Positions 6,424-63,700 of a DNA stretch of 64,000 nt are shown in pieces. Where the stretch lies: positions 1-64,000 of IMG/VR virus record IMGVR_UViG_3300038465_000091; one strand, written 5' to 3'. Under the pieces are notes generated by a model, which worked only from the letters and a program-made list of their open reading frames with translations, made no database searches and was not told the origin of the DNA. The translations under genes and the position numbers were made by a program. Each line of letters starts with the position of its first letter. The stretch's first letter is position 1.

Positions 6424-7212
6424 CTAGTTTTCTTGTTCTTCCGCGTCCTTTTGGAACTTCTTGGTCCGCTGGGCAAGCTGGATTTTGACTTGCTCCATAA
6501 GCTCTTCGGGATCAAGGTCTACCAAATCAACGGTTTCAAAACCCTCCGAATCCGCCCCGGGGGTAGTTAATTTCGTCGCTTTCTTGATCGCTGCACTGAT
6601 TACATCTTTGGCTGACCGAACTGTGCGAGCTTTCCGTTTTTCTCGCAACAGAGCCTCTTCCATTTGAGCCGCCAGATTTACTTTCTTGGAACTCAGTTCG
6701 GCCAACCCCATCAACCCTTGCTTCAGCAGTTCGGCGGTAGGAGCGAATGATTCACGCTCAGGCTCATCCAAGAACCCCCATAAATTAGAGAGGCATATTA
6801 GAACCTTCTTCTGAGTTTGGTAGGCACGCATCGCTAAGCCCATCTGGTTGTATACCTTGCGGGCGTCAAGTCGCATCAAAGAACGCTTTCGAACAATCTC
6901 CGTGTCGTCGTCGCCGTCGTTTATCTCCCAGTGTTTGAACATCGGTGAGTCGTGTTTCTTAGTGCCGACAGGTTTGGCTTTTTTGCCAACTATTTCTTCT
7001 TTCTCACGTTCAAGGGCGGCCTCACGTTCGCCGACGAGTGTGGGCTCTTCGCGACCCTCTTGTTCCGCTTCTAGTTTCTCAGCCTCGGTGAGTGCTGGAG
7101 TCCATGGGCGTCCACAAGTGCGGCAGGTGTTGAAATAATCAATCGGCCCGAAGCACTTAGGGCAAGAGTGGAACTTGTCTTCTTTTGTGAGTGCTACTTT
7201 TTTCTTCGCCAT
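6424..7212 (-). CDS. Hypothetical protein (N-terminal Zn ribbon, coiled coil)
   Basis: CPKC...CRTC motif; ORF coupled to its neighbours. Confidence 0.6.
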   Translation of the reverse strand: MAKKKVALTKEDKFHSCPKCFGPIDYFNTCRTCGRPWTPALTEAEKLEAEQEGREEPTLVGEREAALEREKEEIVGKKAKPVGTKKHDSPMFKHWEINDGDDDTEIVRKRSLMRLDARKVYNQMGLAMRAYQTQKKVLICLSNLWGFLDEPERESFAPTAELLKQGLMGLAELSSKKVNLAAQMEEALLREKRKARTVRSAKDVISAAIKKATKLTTPGADSEGFETVDLVDLDPEELMEQVKIQLAQRTKKFQKDAEEQEN

Positions 7213-7646
7213 TAGTCGTTAAATTCCTTTAAGTACACAATCGCTTTTTGGAGGAGCACCAAGCTGTCTTCGAATTGACCCAACCCACGATTGCATTTGT
7301 GGCATAGCAACCCACGAACTTTGCCTGTCTCATGGTCGTGGTCTATCGGTGCATCCTGCAAAATTGGGATGGAGCAAATCGCACATTTTCTTTCTTGTCG
7401 TTCCCACAACTCGACCAACTGCTCTTTCGTAAAATCGTAACGGCGTAACCGCATGTACTCGTTGTAGGCGAGCCTCGCATCATCCGCACTTCGAATTTCC
7501 GCGTTCAACTTAGCGTGCTTACGTCTATAGTCGGGATGGTTTCTCCAGTAAGCTTTCTTTCCGCAAGAACGGCTACAAAACTTTTGATTCCGCCCCGTCT
7601 TCTTGAACGGTTTTTCACAAAATCCGCAATCCATAGATGACCTCAC
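7212..7646 (-). CDS. Endonuclease VII-like HNH protein
   Basis: CAIC...IDHDHETGKVRGLLCHKCNRGLG. Confidence 0.9.
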   Translation of the reverse strand: MRSSMDCGFCEKPFKKTGRNQKFCSRSCGKKAYWRNHPDYRRKHAKLNAEIRSADDARLAYNEYMRLRRYDFTKEQLVELWERQERKCAICSIPILQDAPIDHDHETGKVRGLLCHKCNRGLGQFEDSLVLLQKAIVYLKEFND

Positions 7647-14231: not shown

Positions 14232-14605
14232 ACATGATTACAGGCCCCCGCCCATGACGGCGGGGATGGTAAACAAGTCGAGGATGCGGTAGATGCGGTT
14301 CATAGTTTTAACCTACTGAGTAATCGAAGGACGGGCGGTCAACCGTAGTCAACCCCCGTCCCTCGCGGTAATGCCAGCCTGAAGCCAAAAGGCTCCAGTT
14401 TCCCCTGACAGGGCGAGCGATTCGTAACCGTGAGGTGTCAGCCTCAGAGGTCTTTATCGCCCCTTGTAACTGGCAATTAGAAAAAACCAGCGTCGGGTGG
14501 GACCTCCTAGCTGGCGCAGTCGATGCTTTGTCCCACGGTACTTGAGGAAGGCGTTCTAAACCTGTGCCATTGTCTCGGCTCGGTCATTCTGGCCCCTCCC
14601 CAAAC

Positions 14606-15299: not shown

Positions 15300-16160
15300 T
15301 CAAAATGCTATTGGGACCTAGCTGCGACTGGCTACGCAGGGTCGTCGGCTCCCGCCGAAGGTCTTGCCTATCAAGCGTCCCAACAGCAATCTTCGCCCCC
15401 ACTGTTCTCGCGGTATTACCGTCCGATTGGATACGGAAGCGTTGCCCCAATTCTTGGGTTACCCGTTCAGGGGGAGCACCCACCCATCAATCTCAAAACT
15501 ATGCGGGCACGAGCTTGGTTAGGCTCCGACCTTCTGCCGTAGTTGCAACGGCCTCCCGATCTTGCTTAGTCGCCGCACAAACTTTCCCAGTCGGCAGGGA
15601 CTCCCGATTCTCCACCCTGCATGACCCCAGTCCCATTTAAGGGACACAGTTGAGCCTGTGCTCGAAGACTGTGCTGACCGCTTGGGTCTCCACGTTCGGA
15701 ATCCCGTCGCAGCGGGAACCCCTTCCAAACGCTTTAGCGTCTCTATTTCTGGATCGTGTCTATTTCCGCCACGACTGGAAAAACGATTGTGGCGGGGGAT
15801 AGCAGCCGTAAAACACGGCCCCACTAGGCTCACGCCCACGTTCTTTTGGTAAATCTCCCTTGAAGAACGATTGCTCATATCTCGTATCGTAGCTCGAACA
15901 GGAGCAGGACACAGAGACACCGCCACAAAATTACTACTCCCATCCGAGGCAGTTCGAACTGCTTGTCGGCGTCGGCTGTAACCAGCGAACGAGCGATTTG
16001 AGCTTACCTTTCGGCAGAGGCTTGCGGAGTTCGTTAAAAGCGGCCTGAGAAGCGATTTCACAGGTTTCACGCCGCACGCTTTTACGTTATGGCGGTTCCC
16101 CGAACAATGACTCCACTCAGGCACAAAGTCAAAGTCCAATGAGGACCTGCTAATCACAGC
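15300..16160 (-). ncRNA. Candidate large structured ncRNA (GOLLD/ROOL size class)
   Basis: About 850 nt with no credible RBS-linked ORF, many short hairpins, inside a tRNA array; family not verified. Confidence 0.35.
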
Positions 16161-16260
16161 CGCTATTACGCGGCAACCTTACTTGTTGTCAGGCGGCTGT
16201 CGGCTTTGGCCCTGAGGATTTACACAGGAGCGACTCACCTATCATGACCTGACAACAAAA

Positions 16261-16340
16261 TGGTTGCAGAGGCTTGGAGTCGCACCAAGTACACCGTTCG
16301 GCTTATGAGGCCGATGAGCCGCAGTTGCTCGATCCCTGCT
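16261..16340 (-). tRNA. Atypical tRNA-Met(CAT)
   Basis: TCGGC-CTCATAA-GCCGA arm; T-loop TGCGACT; encoded CCA; irregular acceptor stem. Confidence 0.6.
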
Positions 16341-16686
16341 TCAAACTTAACAATCCCGCGTGAACCTTGCGATGACAATTCTCACACAGAACCACGCACT
16401 TTGCAATCTCAGCTAAGACTCGTTCTCGACTGAATTGCCTTGCGATTGCGTATGCTATCGTAAATTCTTTCTTGTCCTTGTCCACGTGATGAAATGAAAG
16501 GCAGCAATAAGCCGTTTCAGGACACAACTTGCAGGACAATTTCAAAGACTGGAAGAGCTTTCGTATCTCCTCCTTGTACCGTTTCTTTCGCTGGCTAACC
16601 AGCCGCTTGTGCTCCGCTCTGTACACGGGATCGTTGTTGTAACGATCTCGAAGGTACTTTGCGTGTTTTGCAGGGGTAGTAGGCAC
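16303..16686 (-). CDS. HNH endonuclease (tRNA-array family)
   Basis: CKLC...LSFHH...KCVVLCENCHRKVH. GTG start 6 nt after TGTGGTATACT. Confidence 0.88.
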   Translation of the reverse strand: MPTTPAKHAKYLRDRYNNDPVYRAEHKRLVSQRKKRYKEEIRKLFQSLKLSCKLCPETAYCCLSFHHVDKDKKEFTIAYAIARQFSRERVLAEIAKCVVLCENCHRKVHAGLLSLKQGSSNCGSSAS

Positions 16687-16776
16687 CCTACAAGTATACC
16701 ACAGCCGCAACTCGATCCCCGGGAGACGCTAGGCGACTCCACTTGCAAGGCGCGTGCGCCTCACTGGGGAAACCTT

Positions 16777-16853
<77 letters not shown>

Positions 16854-17162
16854 TCAAAATTATACAGCGGCCTGAGCCCACATCCACCTTCTACGGGGCT
16901 AACCCCCTCGGGCGACTGCGATGCATCCCGAACCCAAGCCGACTTCCCTACCGAGGCAATGGATGAATGCCCCTTCACTAAAATGGGCTGAACGAATGGT
17001 CAGGGTTTTTTACTGTTTAAGGTCGCCCGCCAGCCCGCTGTTGGCCGACCCCCTTTACTGCCATTTACACAGCAAGGGTAGCCTGTCCTCCGTGGTCTAC
17101 CAGCGTACCACGATACTCGACAAGGTACAACTATCTGGGAATCCTTGTCAATCGCCGTGCTA

Positions 17163-20342: not shown

Positions 20343-20414
20343 TTAGAGCACTTCACCCCCGCGCACGGTAGGCGTGCACGGTCGAAACATCGGGGTTGGT
20401 CGCATTGTGTTCAT
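20343..20414 (-). promoter_or_regulatory. Leader peptide ORF of the Pro/Met/Phe tRNA array (MNTMRPTPMFRPCTPTVRGGEVL)
   Basis: 23 codons with 4 Pro, 3 Met, 1 Phe (also 4 Thr, 3 Arg), lying between the promoter and the first tRNA-Pro. Confidence 0.6.
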
Positions 20415-20534
20415 AAAGTCGTCCCGATTCGTGCCCAGAGCCGTAGCTAAACTACAGATGCTCACGAATCGTAAGATTGGTGTGGGGCACGAGTTTCCAC
20501 CGTTCTGTAATCTGCGCCCTTCCCAATCTCTACT

Positions 20535-20568
20535 ATAATACCATGGAAGTTTGAATTTTAGTTAGGAA
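20535..20568 (-). promoter_or_regulatory. Phage promoter TTCCTAAC-N20-TATTAT
   Basis: Fixed-spacing motif shared with six other loci. Confidence 0.7.
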
Positions 20569-20758
20569 AATCGAAATTTATTTCCAAGGCACGGGGTCAT
20601 GGGCGTTCAGTTGTTCGCGGCGGTCCATAAGCTCCTGCCTTCGCGGTTCGTGTATTTCGGCTGCACGCCATCTACGATCAGCGGCTCCCGCGTGCCCTCC
20701 ACAACGACGTTCTTCCGACCCGTCCAAACTCTAGTCTTGGCGGATTTCTTCACGGCTT

Positions 20759-21369: not shown

Positions 21370-23506
21370 TTATGTGCCCTCTGATCTGGAACTTCGGATT
21401 ATGGTTTTAGCAATGACTCTCGCTGCCAATGTTCGTTCGAGAGCTTCTGCAAACGCCATGCGGGTGCACTCTTCGCAACCGGCGGGGAACGATACGGGTG
21501 CGATCATGAGGGTAACCTTGGTGTCGTGTGGTCCGCAAACGTAACCATTTGTAGTTTCAGCTATTCTCAACATCTTCGTCCTCAATCATGACAGCCGCAT
21601 TTCTTCGGGCATTGAAAGATCAGTGGGCCTGTGGCGAATCCGTTGTACACCCCGCCAAGAGCACAACAGTCGCACTCGGCACGTCCAGCAGTCAGGATCG
21701 CCTGCCGCAGGTCGGCAATGTCAAAAGTAGGTGTCGGGTCAATCCCGTGCCATCCCTCAAGCATACTCACTGTCCGCTGCTTCGTCGCTGGAGATCACGC
21801 GGCAGTTGTCAGGACGGCATTCCGTCGCCGCCACGCACTCAGCTTCCAGTTCACACTCGGCTTCAATCTCCACCGTACCGCTGTATTCAACCTGATATTT
21901 CGGCATCATCATCCTCCATCGACAGTGGCAACTCTGCCGCACATTCGAGCCAATCCTTTTGAGTGGGCTCGTCCATAAGCTCCCAGTGCTCGTACATGTA
22001 GTCCAGCGACGAGGCGATCATCGCGTTCTTTTGCCTCACCAACTGGTTGTACGCTTCATTGTCACCACGGGCGAATGCCAGCATCACTGCCTTGACGACG
22101 ATCAGCAATTCCATGTGCCTCTTGGCACAGTTGTTACAGAATGTTTGAACGTCGTCCATATCGGGTAATACTGACTATTCGATTGTTCCGTCTTTGTGAA
22201 CCATCAGGATTTCTTCGCTGATGCGGTACGCCATGACCACTTCCTGATCGTAATACTTAGCGGTCATCCAGCAAATCTCCTCGATCTGGCGTCTGGTGCC
22301 GCTGATCTTGACGGGGATCATCCGCTCGGCGAACACGTTCTTGCTGACGGGGTGAACCCACTGACCTTTCTCTACGGGACGAATGGTCAAGCCGCCCGTG
22401 ATGGCACGGACGCGGGTATCCCACTTCTTGTGGAAGCCCTTGACATATTCGGTCTGGGTCCGATCAATCGTCGGCACCAAGATTTCCCAGAGTTCGTGCA
22501 TCATAAGTTCCCCTTCTTCAACATCTGGCGGACTTGATCGGGCGAAAACATAACTGGCACCCTGCCCACGCAAACCTTGGGGTGCTGCGCCTTAAGCCTC
22601 TCAATAACTTCCTCGATCCCCTGACGGTTTATGCCCGCGTCCATGATGATATTCAGGAGCTTTTCCAGCCCCTTCATCTCGCTTACCCGCATGAACCCGA
22701 TGTTCAACGGGTATTCCGTCCCGTCAGGGAGAATCGCGTACATCCCCATCGGTCGGTCCCTTGCCGTGCAAAATGGTGAGCGATCTCTATCGTGCCTCTG
22801 CCCATCATCGTACTCGACTCGGATCGAATTAGACTGGCTCGGCAATGTCGCTCTCTTTGAGAAGCTGGTACGTCATCTGGTACGGCAGGCGGTGCGAGCC
22901 CTCGGCGACATCCGCAACGGCGTTGTAGGTGTCAACCACCTTCTTGAGTTCGACGGTGGTTAGCGGGCGTACCAGAAGATCAATCTCTTCGCCAATCACG
23001 TTAGTCACTACGATAGCGGCGAGAGTGCCGTCACGGTCTACTGCAAGTCTTGAGAGTCCCATGTCTTCTCCTGAATTTTCTTAAGTGTCAACCAAACAGC
23101 TATTCGACGTACTAAGGGCTCCAATCTACTCGGCCCGAATACGGGCGTTTTACCGTCCGTGAGCAGCTTCATTTATTTTTCTCCAGTTTGGCAATCTCAG
23201 CATACATGTCCATGATGGGCTGAGGGGTGCGACTCACATGCCAGTTGTTCTCTTCCCAGTGCCGCACCTTCTCTTTCAGCAGTCGAAGATAGATTTGGTT
23301 ATCCATCAATCTAGCCCCCATTTGTTCAGCCAAATTTTGAACATTGTCCAACGAAGAAGCTCCGGGTTGCTGATCGGATGCCAGCCCTGAGCCGTGTCAT
23401 CGAGAGAGGTTAACCCGCGTTCGTCTTGAATGATGCACAGGTCCACTGGACAATCTGATGTGGCGGGAATCCACCAACACTCGTACCTGCCTGTTGTTGT
23501 GTACAC
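21370..23506 (-). CDS. Run of about nine tightly packed small hypothetical genes (e.g. 21370-21585, 21582-21770, 21887-22159, 22175-22507, 22501-22845, 22829-23062, 23306-23506)
   Basis: Overlapping start/stop codons in a common orientation; no recognisable domains. Confidence 0.55.
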
Positions 23507-23512
23507 GTGGTT

Positions 23513-23546
23513 ATTCTACCATGAAGGGAGAGGATTTGGTTAGGAA
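23513..23546 (-). promoter_or_regulatory. Phage promoter TTCCTAAC-N20-TAGAAT
   Basis: Fixed-spacing motif upstream of the small-gene run. Confidence 0.7.
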
Positions 23547-23636
23547 ATCGTGGTAAGTAACCGTTTTTGTTTACAATACGTTGGAGTCTGGGAATGACAG
23601 TTCGGACAATACTAAATGGTTTGGAAGTTCAAATTT

Positions 23637-23722
23637 TGGTGTCCGAAGGGGGACTTGAACCCCCACGACCTTGCGGTCACTGGCTCCTAAGGCCAGCGCG
23701 TCTGCCATTCCACCACTCGGAC
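23637..23722 (-). tRNA. tRNA-Leu(TAG)
   Basis: Class II cloverleaf; loop CTTAGGA; CCA. Confidence 0.95.
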
Positions 23723-23727
23723 AAATT

Positions 23728-23812
23728 TGGTGCGGCTAAGAGGAGTCGAACCTCCACGGGGTTGCCCCACTAGGGCTTGAGCCTAGCGCGTCTGCCATTC
23801 CGCCATAACCGC
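23728..23812 (-). tRNA. tRNA-Leu(CAA)
   Basis: Class II; loop CTCAAGC; CCA. Confidence 0.95.
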
Positions 23813-23921
23813 ATAATCAGCACCTTTGTACCGATTAAGCCTGTAAACCGTTGTAAGCGGCATATTTCCACTCCCGTCGCCATTTTGCGCTGAACAGTGA
23901 ATATAGCCTTTCGAGTAAATA

Positions 23922-24007
23922 TGGTGCCGCCGACAGGGATCGAACCTGCATGGCTGTAAACCACTGGATTCTGAGTCCAGCCTGTCTGCCAATTCCAGCA
24001 CGGCGGC
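23922..24007 (-). tRNA. tRNA-Leu(CAG)
   Basis: Class II; loop CTCAGAA; CCA. Confidence 0.95.
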
Positions 24008-24014
24008 AAAATTT

Positions 24015-24099
24015 TGGTGTGGCCGGAGGGACTTGAACCCTCACACCTTTCGGCATCACCCCCTCAAGATGACGTGTCTGCCAATTCCACCACGGCCAC
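24015..24099 (-). tRNA. tRNA-Leu(GAG)
   Basis: Class II; loop TTGAGGG; CCA. Confidence 0.93.
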
Positions 24100-24200
24100 A
24101 TACCGTTTCACCATCCGATGAAACCCCTCGAAACAGTGAAACTCGCGATATGCTTTATTGCATCAAACCGCCGACCTGATGTAATAAAGCACATCAAATT

Positions 24201-24290
24201 TGGTGTGCCTAAGAGGACTTGAACCTCCACGGGGGTATCAGCCCCAACGGACTCTCAGCCCGCCGCGTCTGCCAGTTTCGCCATAGACAC
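24201..24290 (-). tRNA. tRNA-Leu(GAG), second variant
   Basis: Class II; GCGGG-CTGAGAG-TCCGT; CCA. Confidence 0.85.
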
Positions 24291-24295
24291 AAATC

Positions 24296-24383
24296 TGGTG
24301 CCGGGAGCAGGATTCGAACCTGCGAACCTCCTAAGAGGGACTGCTTTACAGGCAGTTGGTTTTAACCGCTCACCCATCCCGGC
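24296..24383 (-). tRNA. tRNA-Tyr(GTA)
   Basis: ACTGC-CTGTAAA-GCAGT; long variable arm; CCA. Confidence 0.95.
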
Positions 24384-24394
24384 ATATTCTCCAC

Positions 24395-24425
24395 AAAAAT
24401 CAAAAGCCGCCTTTTCAGGCGGCTT
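24395..24425 (-). terminator. Attenuator terminator upstream of the Tyr/Leu tRNA array
   Basis: AAGCCGCC-TGAAAA-GGCGGCTT followed by TTGATTTTT, located between the leader ORF and the first tRNA. Confidence 0.9.
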
Positions 24426-24448
24426 GTTCAAATTCGGGTGTAATAACG

Positions 24449-24532
24449 TTACCCTTTGAACACACCGCCCCGACGATAGCTAAGGTACAAGCTATACAGT
24501 CGCAGTGACGGTGATAGGGTTACGTGGGTCAT
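24449..24532 (-). promoter_or_regulatory. Leader peptide ORF of the Leu/Tyr tRNA array (MTHVTLSPSLRLYSLYLSYRRGGVFKG)
   Basis: 27 aa with Leu CTA/CTG/CTG/TTG/CTT and Tyr TAT/TAC/TAT clustered; its 3' end forms the antiterminator arm. Confidence 0.85.
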
Positions 24533-24547
24533 AATGTTCACTTCTAC

Positions 24548-24581
24548 ATAATACCACGGTAGTCAAGATTTTCGCTAGGAA
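24548..24581 (-). promoter_or_regulatory. Phage promoter TTCCTAGC-N20-TATTAT
   Basis: Fixed-spacing motif immediately upstream of the leader ORF. Confidence 0.75.
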
Positions 24582-24606
24582 AATCAAAAATTATTTTTCG
24601 GCAATC

Positions 24607-24909
24607 TCAATAATCCCGATTATCTCCGGCTGAGGCGGGCGGCGGGATGGTCTTCCGCTCCTCGGGAATCGCGGGCGTGTCGATGGGTATCTGCAAGATG
24701 GTGTTGATCTTGGCGATGCAGCGGTTGCACAGGTCTTTCTTCATCCCGAAAATGTTCGTGCCCTGAGTCACTTTGATACGGGGTAGTGGGGCGTGACTCG
24801 CCGTGGGTGCGCCCATGTATACTGTACGGCTGCCGCTGGTGTCCTTACTGGGGTCGTCAACGCTGTCGTCCTGAGCGTGACAGCCGTCGCAATGCAATAT
24901 GTGTGCCAT
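24607..24909 (-). CDS. Hypothetical Zn-finger protein
   Basis: CDGC...CNRC; SD AAGGAG. Confidence 0.65.
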   Translation of the reverse strand: MAHILHCDGCHAQDDSVDDPSKDTSGSRTVYMGAPTASHAPLPRIKVTQGTNIFGMKKDLCNRCIAKINTILQIPIDTPAIPEERKTIPPPASAGDNRDY

Positions 24910-24910
24910 T

Positions 24911-25552
24911 TCAGTTCTCCTTGGTTTCTCGTGGGAGCCCGTTGGTCTGAATGTAGGCGTATCCCCAAGGCGCTAATAGCATCCGTTCCATGAATTGAGC
25001 ACCAGTCTCCGATGCCCTTCCGCCGATGGCTTTCTTCTTGTCGGACGAGAAACACAGCACTTCTACGAAGGTGCGGTATTTGTAATTCAGGTTGCTGGGG
25101 TCGCACATGAGGTATTGCAGCACTTCCTTTTCCCAGTCGTACACGCCTTCTTTTTTGAACTTCTCCCGATCTCGCCGCTTCAACTCAGCTTGCCACAGGG
25201 CCTTGCGTGTTTTGCTGGTGCGTTTTTCTTCCGCCTGTTCAGCGATGTGGCAGCGACAATCACAATCCATACAACAGCCGACTGGGGAATCCCACGGGCC
25301 GTCGAGTTCCACCACGGCGCACAAGCACTTCGGCTTACGGAGTTTGGTGTGGCACTCGCAGTCGCACTTGGATAAATCGCAAGGAACGTTGCCTACGACT
25401 CTCTCCTCGCAGTTATTCGAGCCTTGAGGTTTGCTGGGATCGTAGTTTGGGTTGGGTTCAAACGTCCACTCATCACAATGAACGCACCATGCCTTGTCCC
25501 CTGCGGGACATATTTTATTGCCGATAGTTTTACGATATTTGCGACCAGCCAT
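24911..25552 (-). CDS. Cys/His-rich hypothetical protein
   Basis: Start reassigned to MAGRKY (TAATG coupling); CDCECH and CCMDCDCRCH clusters. Confidence 0.6.
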   Translation of the reverse strand: MAGRKYRKTIGNKICPAGDKAWCVHCDEWTFEPNPNYDPSKPQGSNNCEERVVGNVPCDLSKCDCECHTKLRKPKCLCAVVELDGPWDSPVGCCMDCDCRCHIAEQAEEKRTSKTRKALWQAELKRRDREKFKKEGVYDWEKEVLQYLMCDPSNLNYKYRTFVEVLCFSSDKKKAIGGRASETGAQFMERMLLAPWGYAYIQTNGLPRETKEN

Positions 25553-25607
25553 TAGATCACCAACCTTACGAACTTCTGCCGTTCCGCAATTAGTTTTTCC
25601 GTTGCGT

Positions 25608-25787
25608 TCATAGAAACTCCTCACCCTTCGGCAACTTTTCAACTGTGCTCCACTTGAGCAGGGATTCGGGGATGTCTCCCATAATTTCACGCAAGTATTC
25701 GCCCGCGCTTGCTTTGTCCACAGCTTGGATGTAGAGGGTGTCGCCTTCAGCGACTACTTTGAAAATTTTGCCCTTCTTGGTCTTCAT
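25608..25787 (-). CDS. Small hypothetical protein (59 aa, MKTKKGKIFKVVAEG...)
   Basis: Below the ORF-track cutoff; stop overlaps the ATG of a 19-aa ORF that in turn couples to 25552. Confidence 0.6.
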   Translation of the reverse strand: MKTKKGKIFKVVAEGDTLYIQAVDKASAGEYLREIMGDIPESLLKWSTVEKLPKGEEFL

Positions 25788-25802
25788 GCCATTTGCCTTT
25801 CG

Positions 25803-26111
25803 TCATTTTGCCCAACTCGGGTCTATCAATTTGAAATTCGTCCACAACGGTAAATCAAGTGTTGGCTTGAAAGGTTTCTTGCCGTCGCAACACCGTTCGC
25901 AGACTTGAGCATTGCCTATTTCTGTGAAGAAAAGGTGCTTCTCACAAAAATAGAGGCCGCAACCGTTGTCCCCACCGTAAAGGTCACCGCCGCAAACGTA
26001 CGACAATCCACGGTCAATTCTTTTCCCGCACTTGGGGTGGTCGCAAATGGAGGGAACCCCATACCCAATATCCCGCTTCCAGCGTTCATCGTAGCCAACT
26101 GCCCAGCCCAT
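25803..26111 (-). CDS. Cys-rich hypothetical phage protein
   Basis: MGW..GY...RDIGYGVP..CDHP.C...IDRGL.YVCG pattern familiar from phage genomes; function unknown. Confidence 0.7.
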   Translation of the reverse strand: MGWAVGYDERWKRDIGYGVPSICDHPKCGKRIDRGLSYVCGGDLYGGDNGCGLYFCEKHLFFTEIGNAQVCERCCDGKKPFKPTLDLPLWTNFKLIDPSWAK

Positions 26112-53037: not shown

Positions 53038-56000
53038 TTACACCTGTCCAATCACGACATAATTGAAAATTACGTTAGCTAAGGGAGCGGTGCCAACATT
53101 AACGGTGAAACCCGTCCACGCATTCGTTGCGCCTTGGTATGTAATCCAAATCGGATTCGCCGCGCCCAGATTTGATGTCGGAGTCACAACCAATATAGGC
53201 TGTCCCGCGCCTGTGTAATTGTTTACAAAACTGTACACAACGGTCGTGTTGCCTGAAAGCAGCGTCACCTGACCTGCGAAGTCCGTGTTGGCCGCTGGCG
53301 AATCCGCTTCGATAACGTTGTTTGGGCTAGTGTACCCATACGGAGTGTGACGAATAGCCTGAAGGCGACTGCCCACATCCACAGCACCGAGAACGTTCTG
53401 CTCTTGCGGGTTGACCTCATAAATAGCAAACCGCTTCGTTGCGCTGCCAACGTTCTGTCTCTGAATATAGATGTTGAACGAGTTGGTAATCGTACCCGAT
53501 GGGTCGCCGTTAGAAGTCAAAAATATACCATAGGCGTTGTCCATGTGGCTTCCACTGACAGACTGACCGATGTCCAGAACAAGTGCGGCGGCATTCGGTA
53601 CAGACGCGCCGTGGAAGTTGTTGACACTGATCGCCGCGCCAACGAGCCCGTACCACGGGCTTGATCCCGGTGAAGTTATGTTACCCGTGTTTTCATGATT
53701 TGTTCTGACGCGCAATCCAGTGACGCCTTGCGGAAACACCTGTGCTCCACTCACAGTAATTCCCGTTGATTGAATTGCCTGTACAACATCGAGGCCAGAA
53801 ATAAACTGATTGCCTGTGAACGGATTGCACTGCGAGAGGATACTGGCGCTATTGACTACCGAGTAACTGATTCCAGACCCGGAGTCCGCTGTCGGCCCGT
53901 AATCCGCATGAGTAAATGCTGCTTCGAACTGCGTACCTGACAGTCCTGTGGGAAGCACTACCACTGTGTGACGGTTCAAAAAGGTTGCCGCAGACAAGCC
54001 TGCAAACAGGCCAATTTCAACTCTATCTCCAGCGGACAGTGTGTTGACTGCTTGGAATGTCGCGATGTTGCTGGTAATCTGAATGCTCGTGATGCTCACA
54101 AACTGCGACGGCAGCGAATTTGTGGTGACAAACCTGTACCCAGAATAGGCTTGATAGGTGGCTAACTCTGAAAGCGTTGTCGGATCGAGTTGGTAGTCGG
54201 GCTTGCCTCCAAGTATCACCCCGCTTGTTTCGCCGACACCTAGAACGGTGAGAGCAGCGACGGCACCACCAGCTAAAGGCGTAATGTTCACGTCACCAAA
54301 GCTGTCTACCGAAACTACGGGGGTGCTGGGGGTTCCGTTTGAAAACCAATCTTGAATATCGCTTGCTGAGGCGTCACCCGTAACAGACAATGTTACGAAC
54401 GTGCCCGCTCCTCCACCACCCCCTGCGGGAATAGGAGCCGCTGAGAATAACCCCGTGCTCGCGTTATAACCAGTGAGGTACTCGTATTCTGGAGGTGAAC
54501 CCGCCAGAGTTGGGGCGAACGTTTGAGCTAAAACAAGGGCGACCCACTGAGTTCCCGTTACCGTGGAGCTAAGTACTTGTCCGCTGGTTCCGACCGAACT
54601 CGTGCTGTCCTTCAACGTGCCAGTCAAAGCTATGTTTGCGACAGCCAACGTACCACTTGCATCATTGCTCTGCCCGATAGACAGCGTGCCGGTGGGGTTC
54701 TCATAAATAGTGGTTCCAGTCGTGAGCTTTAGAGAGCGTTGGGAAGCAAAGTACGTTTGGCTCGGAGTGATGTCCAAAGCTATTGCTCCGTTGACGACCA
54801 GTGCTAACCCCCCGGCACCGTTGTTCACTCCCATTCCGTAATTTGTTTTACCAGCAACGGTAAAAGAGAACGCTGGGTTGGTAAGCGTTCCCGCTGTGGA
54901 TGCTTCAAACGTTGAAGCCTGTACTATTCCGCTTGCGTTTATCGCCGCAGCGGTCGCAGTACCAGTGAAAGCTGGACTGGCAAGTGTGGTGATAACGCCG
55001 GTGCTGCCGTATACGGATGTAACGCCTCCTCCGCCGCCTCCTGTCGCGGGCTGCCATACGGGTAGCCCAGCAACTACAGTCAATACCTGACCCGTTGTAC
55101 CGATGGGCAAACGCAGTGGGCCAAGCACTGGGGGAGAACCCGCCAGCCCTTCGTAAATCATATCCCCATCAGCGGTCATAGGATTAACGAAGGTGCCGCT
55201 AAGTATGCCCTCCAAGGAGACGCCCGAATCCTGTGTGTTACCAAGTTCATCGAATGTGACAATATCGCCAGCAGTGATGGCACCAGACCCAGATGGGACC
55301 GTGACGGCGGTAGCGGCTGAAATAGAGACTGCCCCATTGCCCCCACCCACGGCAAGAGCGCGACCTGTCAGGATGCCGCCGCCCAACGTGATCGAGGCAT
55401 ACGCCAAAATGTTTCCAACCATAGTGCTTGTGGCAACCGATGTGAATGAGCTTCCGACGCACCAAACTACGTTGGCTGCTTGAGCACCGTTGACCAAAAG
55501 AATTGACGCCCCGCTTTCGAGCGTGACGGTGGAGGCTGCGATAAACACAAAGATCGCGTTCGGATCGCCCTGAGCGTCAAGGGTGATCGTAGTCGGGATG
55601 TCCAATGCTCCACCAGAGAACACGCCCGCGTGATACACGCCGACGCCGCCCCCACCATCGTTCGTGGATAGGTTGGCGAGGCCCGTCTGAGTCGGGGTCA
55701 GTCCGCTGTAGTAGGTATACGCCGCCTGACCCGCAGTACGTGCCGCAGGAGCGTCGGTGTTGTCCACCGTAGCGGTAGGTGGGTTGAACCCCGTAATACT
55801 CATGGTCGGGGCAGAACCAATCTTGCCGCCTGTTATTGAAGTCGCGGGCGCTGCGTTTGTGATCCCGCTGTACGCCAGCAAAGCGTAGTTCGCGGACGAG
55901 CCGAGTTGCGTAGTGACTGGGGACGGAGGCGGTGCACCACTCGTCAACTGAACAAAAGCACCTGTGCCCTGCACGCTGCAAATCTGGGACGTTGCGAGAC

Positions 56001-56238
56001 AGCCCGAGATTTGAGTGAAATTAGTGCTGCCCACAAACAGTGACGAATCGATGACGCCACTAGGGTTGAGAACCACGGGAACGCCCGCTGATGCGGCCCC
56101 TAGCGACTGTACTGTAACACCATCGACAGCCGTAACGATATCAATCAGGTTTGATCCTGTTTGATTCGGCACAATCGGTGCTGCCACATCCTGATTAGGG
56201 TTTATGTTAAAGACGCAGATTCGCGTAGGACCATTCAT
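53038..56238 (-). CDS. Tail-fibre/virion protein with DUF3494 ice-binding-like domain
   Basis: Gly/Thr/Ser-rich modules; LGSSANYALLA.SGITN, GVY, TITLDAQGDPNAIFVF, NGAQAANVVW.VGSS, GNILA..SITL..G.LTGRALA motifs. Confidence 0.8.
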   Translation of the reverse strand: MNGPTRICVFNINPNQDVAAPIVPNQTGSNLIDIVTAVDGVTVQSLGAASAGVPVVLNPSGVIDSSLFVGSTNFTQISGCLATSQICSVQGTGAFVQLTSGAPPPSPVTTQLGSSANYALLAYSGITNAAPATSITGGKIGSAPTMSITGFNPPTATVDNTDAPAARTAGQAAYTYYSGLTPTQTGLANLSTNDGGGGVGVYHAGVFSGGALDIPTTITLDAQGDPNAIFVFIAASTVTLESGASILLVNGAQAANVVWCVGSSFTSVATSTMVGNILAYASITLGGGILTGRALAVGGGNGAVSISAATAVTVPSGSGAITAGDIVTFDELGNTQDSGVSLEGILSGTFVNPMTADGDMIYEGLAGSPPVLGPLRLPIGTTGQVLTVVAGLPVWQPATGGGGGGVTSVYGSTGVITTLASPAFTGTATAAAINASGIVQASTFEASTAGTLTNPAFSFTVAGKTNYGMGVNNGAGGLALVVNGAIALDITPSQTYFASQRSLKLTTGTTIYENPTGTLSIGQSNDASGTLAVANIALTGTLKDSTSSVGTSGQVLSSTVTGTQWVALVLAQTFAPTLAGSPPEYEYLTGYNASTGLFSAAPIPAGGGGGAGTFVTLSVTGDASASDIQDWFSNGTPSTPVVSVDSFGDVNITPLAGGAVAALTVLGVGETSGVILGGKPDYQLDPTTLSELATYQAYSGYRFVTTNSLPSQFVSITSIQITSNIATFQAVNTLSAGDRVEIGLFAGLSAATFLNRHTVVVLPTGLSGTQFEAAFTHADYGPTADSGSGISYSVVNSASILSQCNPFTGNQFISGLDVVQAIQSTGITVSGAQVFPQGVTGLRVRTNHENTGNITSPGSSPWYGLVGAAISVNNFHGASVPNAAALVLDIGQSVSGSHMDNAYGIFLTSNGDPSGTITNSFNIYIQRQNVGSATKRFAIYEVNPQEQNVLGAVDVGSRLQAIRHTPYGYTSPNNVIEADSPAANTDFAGQVTLLSGNTTVVYSFVNNYTGAGQPILVVTPTSNLGAANPIWITYQGATNAWTGFTVNVGTAPLANVIFNYVVIGQV

Positions 56239-59785: not shown

Positions 59786-60283
59786 ATGGAAACCCAAACC
59801 TGTACTAAATGCCGCGACCCCAAATCTGTAGATGAGTTCGCCTTCAAAAGTAAGGCGGCGGGCAAGCGCAACTCGTGGTGCAAGTCATGCCAAAAGCCCT
59901 ACAAAGACCAGCATTACCAAAACCACAAACAAGTGTACATCAAGAAAGCTCACGAGTATCGAGCGGATTACAAAGCGCGGATTTATGCTCTCCTCGCCGA
60001 ATACTACAAGCAACACCCGTGTGTCGATTGCGGGGCGGATGACTTCATTGTTTGTCAATCTGACCACGTGAGGGGCAAGAAGTTTGAGGGTATCTCAAGG
60101 CTTATTCAACAGGATGCTTCGTGGGAAAGAATACTAGAAGAACTTAAGAAGTGTGAGACTCGATGCGCTAATTGCCACATGCGAAAAACAGCCAAGCAAT
60201 TTGGTTGGTACAAAGATTTGGTAGCGTACAGGGGAATCGAACCCCTCATCATTCGCTTGAAAGGCGAAGGTCCAAACCGATAG
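59786..60283 (+). CDS. HNH endonuclease (tRNA-array family), antisense
   Basis: CVDCG...SDHVRGKK...KCETRCANCH; the C-terminus overlaps tRNA-Glu on the opposite strand. Confidence 0.88.
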   Translation: METQTCTKCRDPKSVDEFAFKSKAAGKRNSWCKSCQKPYKDQHYQNHKQVYIKKAHEYRADYKARIYALLAEYYKQHPCVDCGADDFIVCQSDHVRGKKFEGISRLIQQDASWERILEELKKCETRCANCHMRKTAKQFGWYKDLVAYRGIEPLIIRLKGEGPNR

Positions 60284-60294
60284 ACGGGTACGCC
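60219..60294 (-). tRNA. tRNA-Glu(TTC)
   Basis: TTCGC-CTTTCAA-GCGAA; CCA. Confidence 0.92.
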
Positions 60295-60310
60295 ATTGGA
60301 CTTCTAAAAT

Positions 60311-60385
60311 TGGTGCGCCGTGAGGGATTCGAACCCCCGATCTTTTGCGTGTCATGCAAACGATTTGCCACTAATCTAACAGCGC
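60311..60385 (-). tRNA. tRNA-Val(GAC)
   Basis: TTTGC-ATGACAC-GCAAA; CCA. Confidence 0.9.
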
Positions 60386-60386
60386 G

Positions 60387-60484
60387 TGTACCCGAGAGGG
60401 ATCGAACCTCCGACCTGCCTCCAGCAACCCATGCCGAAGCATAAAAGCTGATGGAGACCGCTCTGCCGGTTGAGCTACAGGCAC
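60387..60484 (-). ncRNA. tRNA body with a ~30-nt structured insert in the anticodon loop
   Basis: Normal acceptor, D and T arms; GTCTC/GAGGC stem encloses CAGC/GCTG and an ATGC-TTCG-GCAT hairpin. Confidence 0.65.
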
Positions 60485-60562
60485 AAACAAAAACTGGTGG
60501 AAAGGAAATCCCGGCAAGGATTTTACATTGCTACATGTCTGCAACAACCCACCCATAAAAAT

Positions 60563-60639
60563 TGGTGCGGCTTGGACTGAATTTCACGTCCGACCCCTCC
60601 CCCGTTATAGGAGTGCTCTGTTCCTGAGCTAAAGCCAAC
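60563..60639 (-). tRNA. Degenerate tRNA, nominal Val(AAC)
   Basis: D-arm GCTC..GAGC; CTCCT-ATAACGG-GGGAG; aberrant T-loop; CCA. Confidence 0.5.
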
Positions 60640-60642
60640 ATC

Positions 60643-60718
60643 TGGTGGACCTAGTGGGATTCGAACCCACGACCTCCGCAGTGCGAGCGCAGCGTTCTCC
60701 CAACTGAACTACAGGCCC
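60643..60718 (-). tRNA. tRNA-Ala(CGC)
   Basis: Loop CTCGCAC; G3:U70; CCA. Confidence 0.93.
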
Positions 60719-60852
60719 AAAACTTTAGACGGTGAGATTCGATACTCACATAAGCGCATCGACTAGCGATATAGCCGATCTCATCATTCAATGAGCTTAG
60801 GACGCTATTTATTTTTCGCCCTCTCTACGGGCGCTTAACTTACGTCTAAACT

Positions 60853-60928
60853 TGGTGCACCTTGAGGGATTCGAACTCTCGACTCCCACCGTGTGAAAGT
60901 GGTACTCTGGCCGCTGAGTTAAAGGTGC
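60853..60928 (-). tRNA. tRNA-Val(CAC)
   Basis: CCACT-TTCACAC-GGTGG; CCA. Confidence 0.92.
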
Positions 60929-60996
60929 AAAATGGTGGAGGCACGTTAAGGGCTTTCTTGCTCGCCCACCCTTACGGTCGTTCACCCCCGTAAACT

Positions 60997-61073
60997 TGGT
61001 AGCGCCTGCGGGAGTCGAACCCGCCGTCATTCGAGTGAGAGTCGAAGGTCCAAAGCCGATAGACGGAGACGCC
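60997..61073 (-). tRNA. tRNA-Glu(CTC)
   Basis: TTCGA-CTCTCAC-TCGAA; CCA. Confidence 0.92.
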
Positions 61074-61143
61074 ACAATCATATAATTGGCCTCTACAGTG
61101 AAATTCTTCACGATTTTGGCCGTTTTATACGACGTAATAAAAT

Positions 61144-61219
61144 TGGTGGACCTAAGGGGGCTCGAACCCCTGACCTCTCGAATGCCATTCGAACGCTCTC
61201 CCAACTGAGCTACAGGCCC
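61144..61219 (-). tRNA. tRNA-Ala(GGC)
   Basis: Loop ATGGCAT; G3:U70; CCA. Confidence 0.93.
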
Positions 61220-61227
61220 AACGACAG

Positions 61228-61301
61228 TGACGCAGTGTATCGGATTTGAACCGATGTTTCCCGCAGGCGTCCTCAACCAGCCTAGACGAACACCTATCAC
61301 C
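61228..61301 (-). ncRNA. tRNA-like RNA lacking a proper anticodon arm
   Basis: Glu/Asp-type D-arm GTCT..AGGAC and T-arm ATCGG-TTCAAAT-CCGAT are separated by only ~13 nt. Confidence 0.55.
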
Positions 61302-61338
61302 ATCTGTGCGCGTGTACATCGCGCAGTCTTTCAAAACT

Positions 61339-61413
61339 TGGAGCGGAACACGGGGCTCGAACCCGCGACCTGTTCGTTGGCAACGAACCGCTCTACCACT
61401 GAGCTAGTTCCGC
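61339..61413 (-). tRNA. tRNA-Gly(GCC)
   Basis: Loop TTGCCAA; GCGGAAC acceptor; U73; CCA. Confidence 0.95.
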
Positions 61414-61659
61414 AAACTTTCAAAAGCAAAAGCATGTGTGTCCCAGTCGGTCGATAGGATTACCAGCCCCTACCACAAGCGGTTCGGGCTTTCGCCGCAA
61501 CCGCCGAACCTCAATCTGAGGTCGTCGAGTCTCGCAGCCGAAGCTACGACGTTTTTCTACCCACTTAAGGGAGTCCACGCGGATACACACAACTCATTTG
61601 GGGAGGATGGGTGTTAATCCAGTTTTGACCTCGTGCCAACACACGAGCCTCCCCCGATC

Positions 61660-61734
61660 TGGAGCGAGCAACGGGAATCGAACCCGTCTCATCGGCTTGG
61701 AGGGCCGGGGCACCGCCAGTTATACCTTACTCGC
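61660..61734 (-). tRNA. tRNA-Gly(TCC), C33 variant
   Basis: Loop CCTCCAA; U73; CCA. Confidence 0.82.
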
Positions 61735-61745
61735 TTAAAATATTC

Positions 61746-62158
61746 GTGTTGAACCTGTAGCCGGGATTTTGTCCGCCAGCTTACGCCAGTTGGACGACCA
61801 TTCCTCTAGGCGTTGCATCGCTACAACGCTCAAGCACCCTACCCGCTGATTACCCGCCTCTTGCGAAGCGAACGGATCGAACACAATCCTGCTCAGCCTA
61901 TTTGGGCTTGCTGCACGTGGAGATTGCTCGTTTCACCCGAACTGAATCGGCTCGTCTCTGTAGCTCTAATCGTCAACACCCTTGCGGGTGCCGCCCAGCC
62001 GTTAGCTGGCACGCTGTTCTTTGCAGTCCCGAACTTCCTCCCCTGCGCTCAACGCCGGACTTGGTTGGGTATTTCACATCAACACTGCCGATGCGAATCT
62101 TACACGCTTCCAAGCACAGGACGTATATCTACGCAGCAGCGGTCGTCCAATTCAACAC
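61746..62158 (-). ncRNA. rnpB: RNase P RNA (bacterial type A-like)
   Basis: P1 GTGTTGAA/TTCAACAC; P2 ACGACCG/TGGTCGT; P4 strands GAGGAAGTTCGGG and ACAAAATCCCGGCTA; GGGTGAAACG and GAGCAA core motifs. Confidence 0.9.
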
Positions 62159-62234
62159 AAATTTTCAAAGACCTAATAGACGATGCAAAAGCTTTGTTCT
62201 GCACTCAATCACCCGATAAACTGGGCGATGATTT

Positions 62235-62309
62235 TGGAGCACCCGGTCGGTGTCGAGCCGACTCATAATGGTTTTGCAGACCATTGCGTTCCCGTTTCGC
62301 CACGGATGC
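62235..62309 (-). tRNA. tRNA-Cys(GCA)
   Basis: ATGGT-CTGCAAA-ACCAT; U73; CCA. Confidence 0.9.
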
Positions 62310-62313
62310 AAAT

Positions 62314-62694
62314 TTAAATGCGTTTCAATACCTGTGCTTCTTCAAAAGTCGCTAGGCGGTGATGATTAGCACAAAGCACATCACACTTTGCGGCTTCTCG
62401 CTTCACTCGTACAAGGGACCAACCCTTCTTACGGGTTTCAGATAAATTCAGTTCTTTTGTCGCCCTATCGCGATGGGCAAAATCTAAACAGACTGGATGT
62501 TCCCGCCATCCGCAAACTTTACAACCCATCTCCATTTTGTAAGCGTCCAGCCATTGACAAATAACGGCTATCCGCTTTTTATCATTCTTCCGCACCGCTT
62601 TCAAGTGTCGTGCCTTCCGAACTGGATCGGCGTAATACCGCTTCCAGTACCCAGCACGATATTCCTTGCGCTTCTTGCAATCCTTCAACGGCAT
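62314..62694 (-). CDS. HNH endonuclease (tRNA-array family)
   Basis: CKVCG...CLDFAHRD...KCDVLCANHHR. Confidence 0.88.
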   Translation of the reverse strand: MPLKDCKKRKEYRAGYWKRYYADPVRKARHLKAVRKNDKKRIAVICQWLDAYKMEMGCKVCGWREHPVCLDFAHRDRATKELNLSETRKKGWSLVRVKREAAKCDVLCANHHRLATFEEAQVLKRI

Positions 62695-62699
62695 AAATT

Positions 62700-62773
62700 T
62701 GGCGGGGATACGGAGAATTGAACTCCGATTTTATGATAGACAGTCAAATGTCCTACCCTTGAACGATATCCCC
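62700..62773 (-). tRNA. tRNA-Asp(GTC)
   Basis: Loop CTGTCTA; G73; CCA. Confidence 0.9.
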
Positions 62774-62785
62774 GTTCTTAAATTT

Positions 62786-62860
62786 TGGTGGACACGGGGG
62801 GATTTGAACCCCTTCTTTCACTTTGCAAGAGTGACGCATTCCCAGTTATGCTACCGGCCC
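62786..62860 (-). tRNA. tRNA-Ala(TGC)
   Basis: TCACT-CTTGCAA-AGTGA; G3:U70; irregular lower acceptor stem; CCA. Confidence 0.82.
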
Positions 62861-63075
62861 ATTTTTGCTGGTTTCGCGACACTCTTCGTGCCGTGTACCA
62901 GATCAAACTCTAATTGCCGAACCACCATCAGGTCCATCTTGAACAGGGCTTCATCCTCGGTGTCGGCAGATGCGACTAGGCCGAGGGTGGGGTGAACCAC
63001 TTTGAATCCCCAATCATACCTCTCGACCTCCACGGTCGTTACCAGCTTGACGATGCGTTGTCTGTCGCGTTTCAT
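62851..63075 (-). CDS. Small HicB-like protein
   Basis: SD GGAG; W.F.V.HPTLGLVASADTEDEAL resembles the HicB N-terminal domain. Confidence 0.55.
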   Translation of the reverse strand: MKRDRQRIVKLVTTVEVERYDWGFKVVHPTLGLVASADTEDEALFKMDLMVVRQLEFDLVHGTKSVAKPAKMGR

Positions 63076-63090
63076 CTTCTCTCCGAATCT

Positions 63091-63169
63091 TGGTACGCCG
63101 AGAGGGACTCGAACCCCCGATAATACTTGCTTGTAGGGCAAGTGGTTTCGCCGCTCACGCCATCGGCGT
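63091..63169 (-). tRNA. tRNA-Val(TAC), C33 variant
   Basis: CTTGC-CCTACAA-GCAAG; irregular D-stem; CCA. Confidence 0.8.
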
Positions 63170-63180
63170 AAATTTACCGC

Positions 63181-63214
63181 AAAAACAAAAAGGACGCCTT
63201 TTTAGGGGCGTCCT
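63181..63214 (-). terminator. Attenuator terminator upstream of the Val/Ala/Gly/Asp/Glu/Cys array
   Basis: AGGACGCC-CCTAAAAA-GGCGTCCT followed by TTTTGTTTTT, about 11 nt before tRNA-Val. Confidence 0.92.
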
Positions 63215-63238
63215 CGGAATTCGTTGGTTTTAGGCTAT

Positions 63239-63385
63239 TTAGCCACCCCAACCATCCAAGGACACCATATCTCCTACCGGCGCCGCGTCAGCGGCGACAG
63301 TACCGCGTTCGGCTGTACAAGCCGACAGGACCACGCCTGCACAGACGACCGTCACGACAACACCGTCTTGGAGAATGGAGTTCAT
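63239..63385 (-). promoter_or_regulatory. Leader peptide ORF (MNSILQDGVVVTVVCAGVVLSACTAERGTVAADAAPVGDMVSLDGWGG)
   Basis: 48 aa: 10 Val, 7 Ala, 7 Gly, 4 Asp, 2 Cys, 1 Glu; its 3' end forms a 12-bp antiterminator arm; TATTGT element upstream. Confidence 0.85.
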
Positions 63386-63700
63386 AAGCGTCTCTATTTA
63401 CAATACTCGGTATTCAGGAAACTTGCAACAACTATTTTTCAGAAAAGTTTGAGGGCGCAACCACGGACGAACCGTGTGATCTTCTGTCTTGCTACGGCTA
63501 TCAGCCGCCTTCCGAACTGCGCCCCGATGAAAATACATCGGCTACAGTAACCCTGCACGTTGAACTGGTGCCAGCTAGAGTTCGGGACCGTTGCCACCGT
63601 TGCACCTGAGGTACACCGGATTATGCGGGTCATGACTCCCGTGACAGTGGGTTTTAGCCCTAGCCAGCCGTGCACAGTATGCAGCCGAATCTCAAAATTT

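Follow-up and report, generated by a model that had tools for sequence, protein, structure and literature searches.

Phage tRNA genes are commonly viewed as passive, simply expressed cargo. The locus described here raises the question of whether one phage tRNA array is governed by a short leader just upstream of it, and of what such a leader would sense. The DNA analyzed (hereafter the window, 64,000 nucleotides) is the first 64 kb of a 223.5-kb IMG/VR viral contig, and the coordinates of window and contig are identical. Large-phage replication genes for a family A DNA polymerase, a RecA-like protein, and a helicase are present, as are 27 tRNA genes, all on the minus strand. One group consists of tRNA-Tyr(GTA) at 24383-24296 followed by tRNA-Leu genes with the anticodons GAG, GAG, CAG, CAA, and TAG, ending at 23637 (array 23637-24383, minus). 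A preliminary description had read the region immediately upstream as an attenuator controlled by leucine and tyrosine. We find that this Leu/Tyr element is probably a ribosome-mediated leader-peptide transcription attenuator of a phage tRNA operon, a conclusion that rests on computation only.

Relatives of the element and its surroundings

Megablast of window positions 23000-26000 against deposited phage genomes returned no match, and an exact 21-mer search recovered only copies of the same phage. Relatives of the Leu/Tyr element were gathered in part through two neighboring proteins and otherwise with a DNA pattern that specified just the central portion of the ORF, leaving regions 2-4 of the element free. 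This yielded 12 distinct variants in related phage contigs, all from environmental metagenomes and one of them on a 455-kb contig. Each variant has a promoter, an ORF of 25-28 codons with an identical start context, a U-tailed hairpin rich in G+C, and one or two tRNA-Tyr genes. Genes for tRNA-Leu follow in nine of the 12, and the contigs of the remaining three (L022, L026, and L027) stop too early. Pattern matches in L010, L011, and L014 had no tRNAs beside them and were rejected as chance, as were those in L038, L039, L041, and L051. The leader pattern had no match in bacterial or archaeal genomes, so it offers no clue to the host and no sign of a cellular origin.

Several other features were observed around these tRNA genes. 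Between the tRNA-Tyr and tRNA-Leu genes of L025, at about position 471, ARAGORN reported a tRNA whose anticodon, AAA (Phe), is unusual; it may be a degenerate or altered type II tRNA. Small Cys/His-rich ORFs resembling HNH-type homing endonucleases lie among the array tRNAs at 16303-16710 and 62310-62700 of the window (both minus). Similar ORFs occur in L007 (6839-7303 and 7647-8273), and their placement differs among relatives, making them a possible cause of variable tRNA spacing. Inter-tRNA stretches of several hundred bases at 15519-16260 (minus) and 16860-17160 hold only low-quality ORFs; further non-coding RNAs are possible there, with no match at the Rfam gathering thresholds. Elsewhere in the window, a 1066-residue ORF (53038-56238, minus) contains an ice-binding-like domain (Pfam PF11999, E = 8e-29), which is unusual for the neighborhood of a phage replication region.

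Codon content of the Leu/Tyr leader

The leader ORF has 27 codons plus a stop and occupies 24449-24532 on the minus strand, with its ATG at 24532-24530 and its TAA at 24451-24449. Codons 6-19 include five Leu codons (CTA, CTG, CTG, TTG, and CTT) and three Tyr codons (TAT, TAC, and TAT), such that Leu and Tyr fill 8 of 26 codons, compared with a background frequency of 0.115 in the 54 long ORFs of the window (P = 0.007). The preliminary description had given both this ORF and the content of codons 6-19, and both held. Its proposal that every anticodon type in the array has a matching leader codon held as well, and extends to the relatives: CTA, CTG, TTG, and CTT are found in all 12 leaders, a set that gives each of the Leu anticodons in the arrays (TAG, CAG, CAA, and GAG) its codon. 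Five variants contain exactly four Leu codons, one per class, and the chance of full four-class coverage by a leader with four Leu codons is 0.035. The codon CTA makes up only 7% of Leu codons in the genes of this phage, yet it is invariant at leader codon 6. The codon TTG is present in all variants at a variable position (codon 9, 11, 15, 17, or 19). An always-present but moving TTG, together with an invariant rare CTA, suggests that selection acts on which codons the leader contains and not on a set position in the RNA. The preliminary description had also remarked that the leader has no TTA and the array no TAA tRNA, which held in the window; among the variants, TTA occurs only at codon 4 of the L007 type, and the TAA anticodon is absent from every array.

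Evidence that the leader is translated is more limited. The ORF is kept at 25-28 codons in all 12 variants, with indels of 3 nt inside it and of 1-4 nt outside or downstream. No third-position substitution bias was found in the leader ORF (variable columns 14/14/12), and support for translation therefore comes only from ORF retention and in-frame indels. The missing bias is compatible with a leader peptide that has no function of its own, and provides no positive evidence for translation. Several variants have only weak Shine-Dalgarno-like purine tracts, and the ORF is preceded by only a short 5' UTR. The regulatory codons are scattered through the leader without forming a run. Codons for Ser number 3-6 per leader, about as common as those for Tyr, and no tRNA-Ser lies nearby. 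Two Ser and two Tyr codons build the stems of a hairpin inside the ORF (24495-24476), so several Tyr and Ser codons may be fixed by RNA structure. Ser codons had been raised as a caveat in the preliminary description, and the caveat stands: they lack a matching tRNA, lie in RNA stems, and remain unexplained.

Promoter

The promoter region (24548-24597, minus) was read from the sequence as an A/T-rich upstream motif at 24597-24567 followed by an extended -10, made up of TG at 24556-24555 and TATTAT at 24553-24548. The preliminary description had placed the promoter at 24548-24581, and this claim held in part: its -10 side stands as an extended -10, but its -35 assignment failed. No acceptable -35 hexamer at a distance of 17 nt exists within 24548-24581, and a consensus promoter scan did not report the Leu/Tyr promoter. 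From sequence alone, the promoter is better taken as an extended -10 with a conserved A/T-rich motif. The motif is conserved among relatives, and a second copy lies at 20584-20529 (minus), where the number of chance matches expected is 0. The TG is missing from variants with TTGACA, or a similar hexamer, at 17 nt and present in those without a -35. A motif AAAATA(A/G)TT is common to the promoters at 24548-24597, 20529-20584, and 63400-63440 (all minus) and is also found in relatives; TG is present in those promoter copies that have about 11 extra bases between this motif and the -10.

Terminator and alternative pairings

An intrinsic terminator lies downstream of the ORF at 24395-24425 (minus), with a 5' arm (24425-24417), a loop, a 3' arm (24412-24404), and a T run (24403-24395). 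Its stem (24425-24404) has nine pairs, six of them G-C, with a predicted energy of -16.9 kcal/mol, and was the top minus-strand match of the terminator scan. The corresponding hairpins of the variants range from -17 to -25 kcal/mol and carry a U tail, and two stem pairs show compensatory changes among 11 sequences. The terminator and array coordinates given in the preliminary description both held. Because the gap after the T run is only 11 nt, there is no room for a separate promoter between the terminator and tRNA-Tyr.

The pairing partners upstream of this terminator define two competing arrangements. Region 1, with the core CACCGUC in codons 7-9 (24507-24513, minus), pairs in the full-length MFE fold with region 2a when no ribosome covers region 1. 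Region 2a, GGGGCGGUG in codons 21-24 (24463-24471, minus), has either region 1 or the terminator 5' arm as its partner, and that arm is common to the terminator and the antiterminator (2a:3b). A scaffold hairpin 2b:3a, UGUUCAAAGGGU ... ACCC-GAA-UUUGAACA (24426-24462, minus), is found in both states, with the stop codon overlapping its 5' strand; compensating changes in it were seen in L007 (A-U to G-C), L027, and L030. The preliminary description had paired 24469-24451 with 24439-24418, and folding recovered this pairing. The central hairpin within the ORF (AUAGCU ... AGCUAU, 24476-24495, minus) consists of Tyr and Ser codons and is possibly a polymerase pause hairpin, a role that is inferred; the same place holds a hairpin with different pairs in the L007 type.

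Each variant was folded with a ribosome footprint masked; the preliminary description had proposed folding 24395-24532 with and without the leader masked. With the mask at the first Tyr codon, all 12 variants form an antiterminator in which region 2a pairs with the terminator 5' arm (-18 to -36 kcal/mol). With the mask at the stop codon, region 2 is covered and the terminator has no competitor. Unmasked full-length RNA pairs region 1 with region 2a, keeps the inner 2b:3a hairpin, and forms the terminator. The claim that a ribosome at the stop codon blocks the arm and one stalled at Leu or Tyr frees it is supported by these masked folds, and the response of read-through is inferred. Ribosome-free truncated RNA folds as antiterminator in most variants, and the state expected without translation is therefore uncertain.

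The leader fold is more stable than all 200 of 200 shuffled sequences (z = -4.2). For the duplex between the last 34 nt of the window ORF and the terminator 5' arm, about 0.3% of dinucleotide shuffles were equal or better (P = 0.003). The last leader codons can pair with this arm in all 12 variants, and the duplex is weaker relative to shuffles in L009, L027, and L005 (P = 0.07-0.17, beating 83-93%). In L026 and L022, a G-to-A change in region 2a is matched by C-to-U changes in region 1 and in the 5' arm and by a G-to-A change in the 3' arm. Across 10 sequences, every cell of the region 1:2a helix is paired (100%), and one pair appears as C-G in five, U-A in four, and U-G in one. For the 1:2 structure as a whole, 92.7% of cells are paired, versus 29-53% when the strands are slid, and 499 of 500 shuffles have a lower covariation score. 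Most pairs of the outer antiterminator helix are invariant, which leaves no significant covariation (its score is reached in 153 of 500 shuffles), and L024 and L027 have an A-C mismatch there. The inner antiterminator helix was poorly aligned by MAFFT and RNAalifold, and compensating changes were read off the sequences without being formally counted. The L009 element has the identical topology in a different sequence.

Leaders upstream of other tRNA groups

The upstream sequence of every tRNA group in the window was inspected for the same design. A second array, at 60219-63169 (minus), contains tRNA genes for Val, Ala, Asp, and Cys, an RNase P RNA, and tRNA genes for Gly, Gly, Ala, Glu, Val, Ala, Val, and Glu, beginning with tRNA-Val(TAC) at 63169. 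Its promoter (63400-63428, minus) consists of TTGCAA, a 17-nt spacer, and TATTGT preceded by a AAAAATAG motif, and is conserved in five relatives. The leader ORF that follows (63239-63385, minus) has 48 codons, among them 10 Val, 7 Ala, 7 Gly, 4 Asp, 2 Cys, and 1 Glu. Of the 47 codons that follow the start, 31 encode one of these six amino acids (background frequency 0.365; P = 3.9e-5), and seven peptide variants of this Val-type leader were found. The terminator, which was the best minus-strand match of its terminator scan, has arms at 63213-63207 and 63198-63192 and a T run at 63191-63181; together with the antiterminator 3' strand it spans 63181-63218 (minus). That strand (63218-63207) pairs over 12 bases with leader codons 40-44 (63266-63255), a duplex that exceeds chance (P = 0.0005-0.004) and in which one pair is U-G, C-G, or U-A depending on the variant. 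The full-length MFE fold of the Val type is the antiterminator. From the sequence alone we infer that the Val-type leader has the same design as the Leu/Tyr leader, built from unrelated sequence and other codons.

The RNase P RNA in this array (62086-61741, minus) is a full-length bacterial type A molecule (139 bits against a cut-off of 100) located between tRNA-Cys and tRNA-Gly(TCC). Lying on the same strand inside the array, it is probably transcribed together with the tRNAs behind the Val-type leader. A literature text search turned up no description of an RNase P RNA encoded by a phage.

A third element (20343-20584, minus) contains the second copy of the promoter motif (20584-20529), a structured 5' UTR, and a 23-codon ORF at 20414-20343. 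This Pro-type ORF has four Pro codons (CCA, CCG, CCG, and CCT) and lies about 125 nt upstream of tRNA-Pro(TGG). Relatives in L009 (9720-9950), L015 (about 7170-7430), L033, and L049 preserve an ORF of 23-25 codons with three or four Pro codons, always upstream of tRNA-Pro genes. No canonical terminator was found for the Pro-type element, and its folds were inconsistent across four variants, for which reason the Pro-type leader was not called an attenuator. Its Arg-Gly-Gly codons are able to pair with a downstream CCCCGYGC stretch, which in L033 can alternatively pair with the first bases of tRNA-Pro itself; the L033 pairing hints, as a possibility only, at control of tRNA folding or processing rather than of termination. 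Across the three leaders, codon enrichment follows a diagonal: each is enriched for its own array (P = 0.007, 0.025, and 3.9e-5), with P > 0.5 for every other array.

The remaining groups gave no further example of the design. An ORF before the two tRNA-Phe genes was rejected, having a single Phe codon and no terminator. This ORF (14238-14303, minus; 21 codons) ends 6 nt before the first tRNA-Phe, starts with Met-Asn-Arg as the L009 leader does, and ends with Gly-Gly-Gly-Leu; the stretch of about 250 nt upstream of it (14300-14560) has no convincing ORF. Inspection of the sequence upstream of the Met and Gln tRNAs, the second tRNA-Pro, and the first tRNA-Ala revealed no leader.

A proposed attenuation mechanism

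The Leu/Tyr element meets the sequence-level criteria of the attenuator class, having a short ORF, codon enrichment, an adjacent terminator, a strand-sharing antiterminator, and a competing 1:2 hairpin. Its parts, their conservation, the competing pairings, and the match between codons and array are shown here; translation, stalling, read-through, and feedback are inferred. The attenuator reading of the preliminary description is supported to this extent, in that every sequence-level prediction examined is met, and translation, read-through, and the response to Leu and Tyr likewise remain inferences.

We propose that transcription would start at the extended -10 promoter and that a ribosome would translate the 27-codon leader while RNA polymerase proceeds. 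The pivot would be region 2a (24471-24463), partnered either by region 1 (24513-24507) or by the terminator 5' arm (24425-24417). When decoding is fast, the ribosome would reach the stop codon and cover region 2, the 5' arm would pair with the 3' arm, and transcription would stop 11 nt before tRNA-Tyr. When the ribosome waits at a Leu or Tyr codon (codons 6-17), it would cover region 1 and leave region 2 free to pair with the newly made 5' arm, such that no terminator forms and the six tRNA genes are transcribed. Fresh tRNAs would then end the stall, giving a negative feedback loop. Since the leader has one codon per Leu anticodon of the array, running short of any single tRNA-Leu species should be enough to open the switch. 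A leader of this design, with different sequence and codons, would control the Val/Ala/Asp/Cys/Gly/Glu array at 63.4 kb.

Alternative explanations

The most serious alternative is that the switch senses translation in general rather than Leu and Tyr, with codon content secondary. Translation of the leader would melt the antiterminator, and the arrays would be on whenever initiation or elongation is impaired, whatever the cause, and off when translation proceeds well. We consider this unlikely, though it takes most of the probability left over from the preferred reading. In its favor, untranslated nascent RNA is already antiterminator in most variants, the full-length Val-type fold is likewise, the regulatory codons are not in runs, and Ser is as frequent as Tyr. 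Against it, the codon content of three leaders fits their own arrays and no other, and none of the 12 variants has lost any of the four Leu codon classes, even as TTG moves; the rare CTA stays invariant. A different objection is that the ORF is simply a conserved small phage gene, or the region an untranslated structured 5' leader, with a constitutive leaky terminator that merely lowers transcription into the tRNA genes and alternative pairings that are incidental. The lack of third-position bias, the weak covariation of the antiterminator, and the conservation of the Pro-type ORF without a terminator all speak for this possibility. It too is unlikely: region 2a covaries with both of its partners, the duplex is above chance in the window and in the Val leaders, unrelated sequences (L009 and the Val type) keep the topology, and the match between codons and arrays is left unexplained.

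An RNA-only switch of the riboswitch or T-box kind, in which the antiterminator or the terminator would be selected by a ligand (uncharged tRNA, for example) or by a phage protein, without a role for the ribosome, appears very improbable. In its favor are the alternative hairpins, the fact that tRNA genes are the regulated targets, and the precedent of T-box elements as the known tRNA sensors. Against this, apart from a terminator-only resemblance described below, there is no Rfam match, T-box included, at lenient E values (limits of 10 and 1 for the Leu/Tyr and Val leaders, respectively), and the element of about 130 nt has no specifier-loop architecture. All variants also preserve an ATG-to-stop frame with 3-nt indels, and codon content tracks the arrays. 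Ribosome-mediated attenuation responding to the tRNAs of the array remains our preferred reading.

Implications for phage tRNA arrays

A full-text literature search found no report of leader-peptide attenuation before tRNA genes in phages or cells; its coverage was incomplete, and an older report is possible. The novelty lies in the target, tRNA genes, and the attenuation mechanism itself is known. If the reading is correct, this would be the first leader-peptide attenuation of tRNA genes and a direct sensor of tRNA supply, by which the phage gauges decoding at particular codons and refills exactly the tRNAs that are scarce. The product of the regulated gene would be the very molecule sensed, making this the shortest possible feedback loop, and the reason that large phages carry tRNAs would become testable through what opens the switch. 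The leaders are compact (about 150 nt) and modular, making them possible sensors, for use in laboratory strains, of the availability of specific tRNAs.

We lean, with limited confidence, toward a bolder reading as well, in which a huge-phage lineage that includes the 223-kb and 455-kb contigs divides its tRNA repertoire into independent modules that respond to demand. Two sub-arrays at minimum, and perhaps a third, would each have a leader whose codons list the tRNAs behind it, and each group, together with the embedded RNase P RNA, would be transcribed only upon stalls for those tRNAs. Host shut-off, a mismatch in codon usage, and tRNA-cleaving host defenses are possible causes of such shortages.

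Comparison with known systems

No Rfam family matched the Leu/Tyr leader at gathering thresholds; the best hit at lenient thresholds was Phe_leader, which scored 17 bits (cut-off 55) and covered only the terminator. The Val-type leader had no Rfam match, lenient thresholds included, and the T-box model did not match the Leu/Tyr leader at E up to 10. Neither leader belongs to the curated Rfam Leu_leader, Phe_leader, His_leader, Thr_leader, or Trp_leader families, nor to the T-box. The T-box resembles the phage element in switching between terminator and antiterminator according to the state of a specific tRNA, but it binds uncharged tRNA directly without a ribosome, and the phage leader has no T-box signature. 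T-box elements upstream of tRNA genes are not known in the literature searched. The tRNA clusters of T4, T5, and huge phages are organized in operons and are thought to sustain translation or to replace tRNAs lost in infection. They share with the present arrays the grouping of tRNAs in operons, but no leader-peptide control of them has been reported in the literature searched.

By analogy, the design may be described as an attenuator of the trp/leu type combined with the multivalent logic of ilv and thr. The enterobacterial leu operon is preceded by leuL (Rfam Leu_leader), a short ORF with Leu codons that include the rare CUA. The 5' arm of its terminator is common to the antiterminator, an upstream 1:2 hairpin competes, and the position of the ribosome decides the outcome. 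The Leu/Tyr leader shares with leuL the ORF with CUA, the arm-sharing terminator, and the 1:2 hairpin. It differs in that its Leu codons are scattered, one per anticodon class, and mixed with Tyr, and in that it would regulate tRNAs rather than the biosynthetic enzymes controlled by leuL, with no match to the Rfam family in sequence or structure. Multivalence is familiar from the ilvGMEDA leader, with Leu, Val, and Ile codons, and from the thr leader, with Thr and Ile codons, in which any one shortage leads to read-through. The Leu/Tyr leader and, above all, the Val/Ala/Gly/Asp/Cys/Glu leader are multivalent in the same sense, though a phage leader spans up to six amino acids and mirrors the tRNAs downstream rather than a shared biosynthetic pathway. 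Control of a translation component by a leader peptide is known from the pheST attenuator, in which the pheM leader governs Phe-tRNA synthetase. The phage element likewise would place the translation apparatus, rather than amino-acid synthesis, under a leader peptide. The pheST target is protein-coding, however, whereas the product of the phage operon is the tRNA that the leader codons demand, such that the feedback would be direct.
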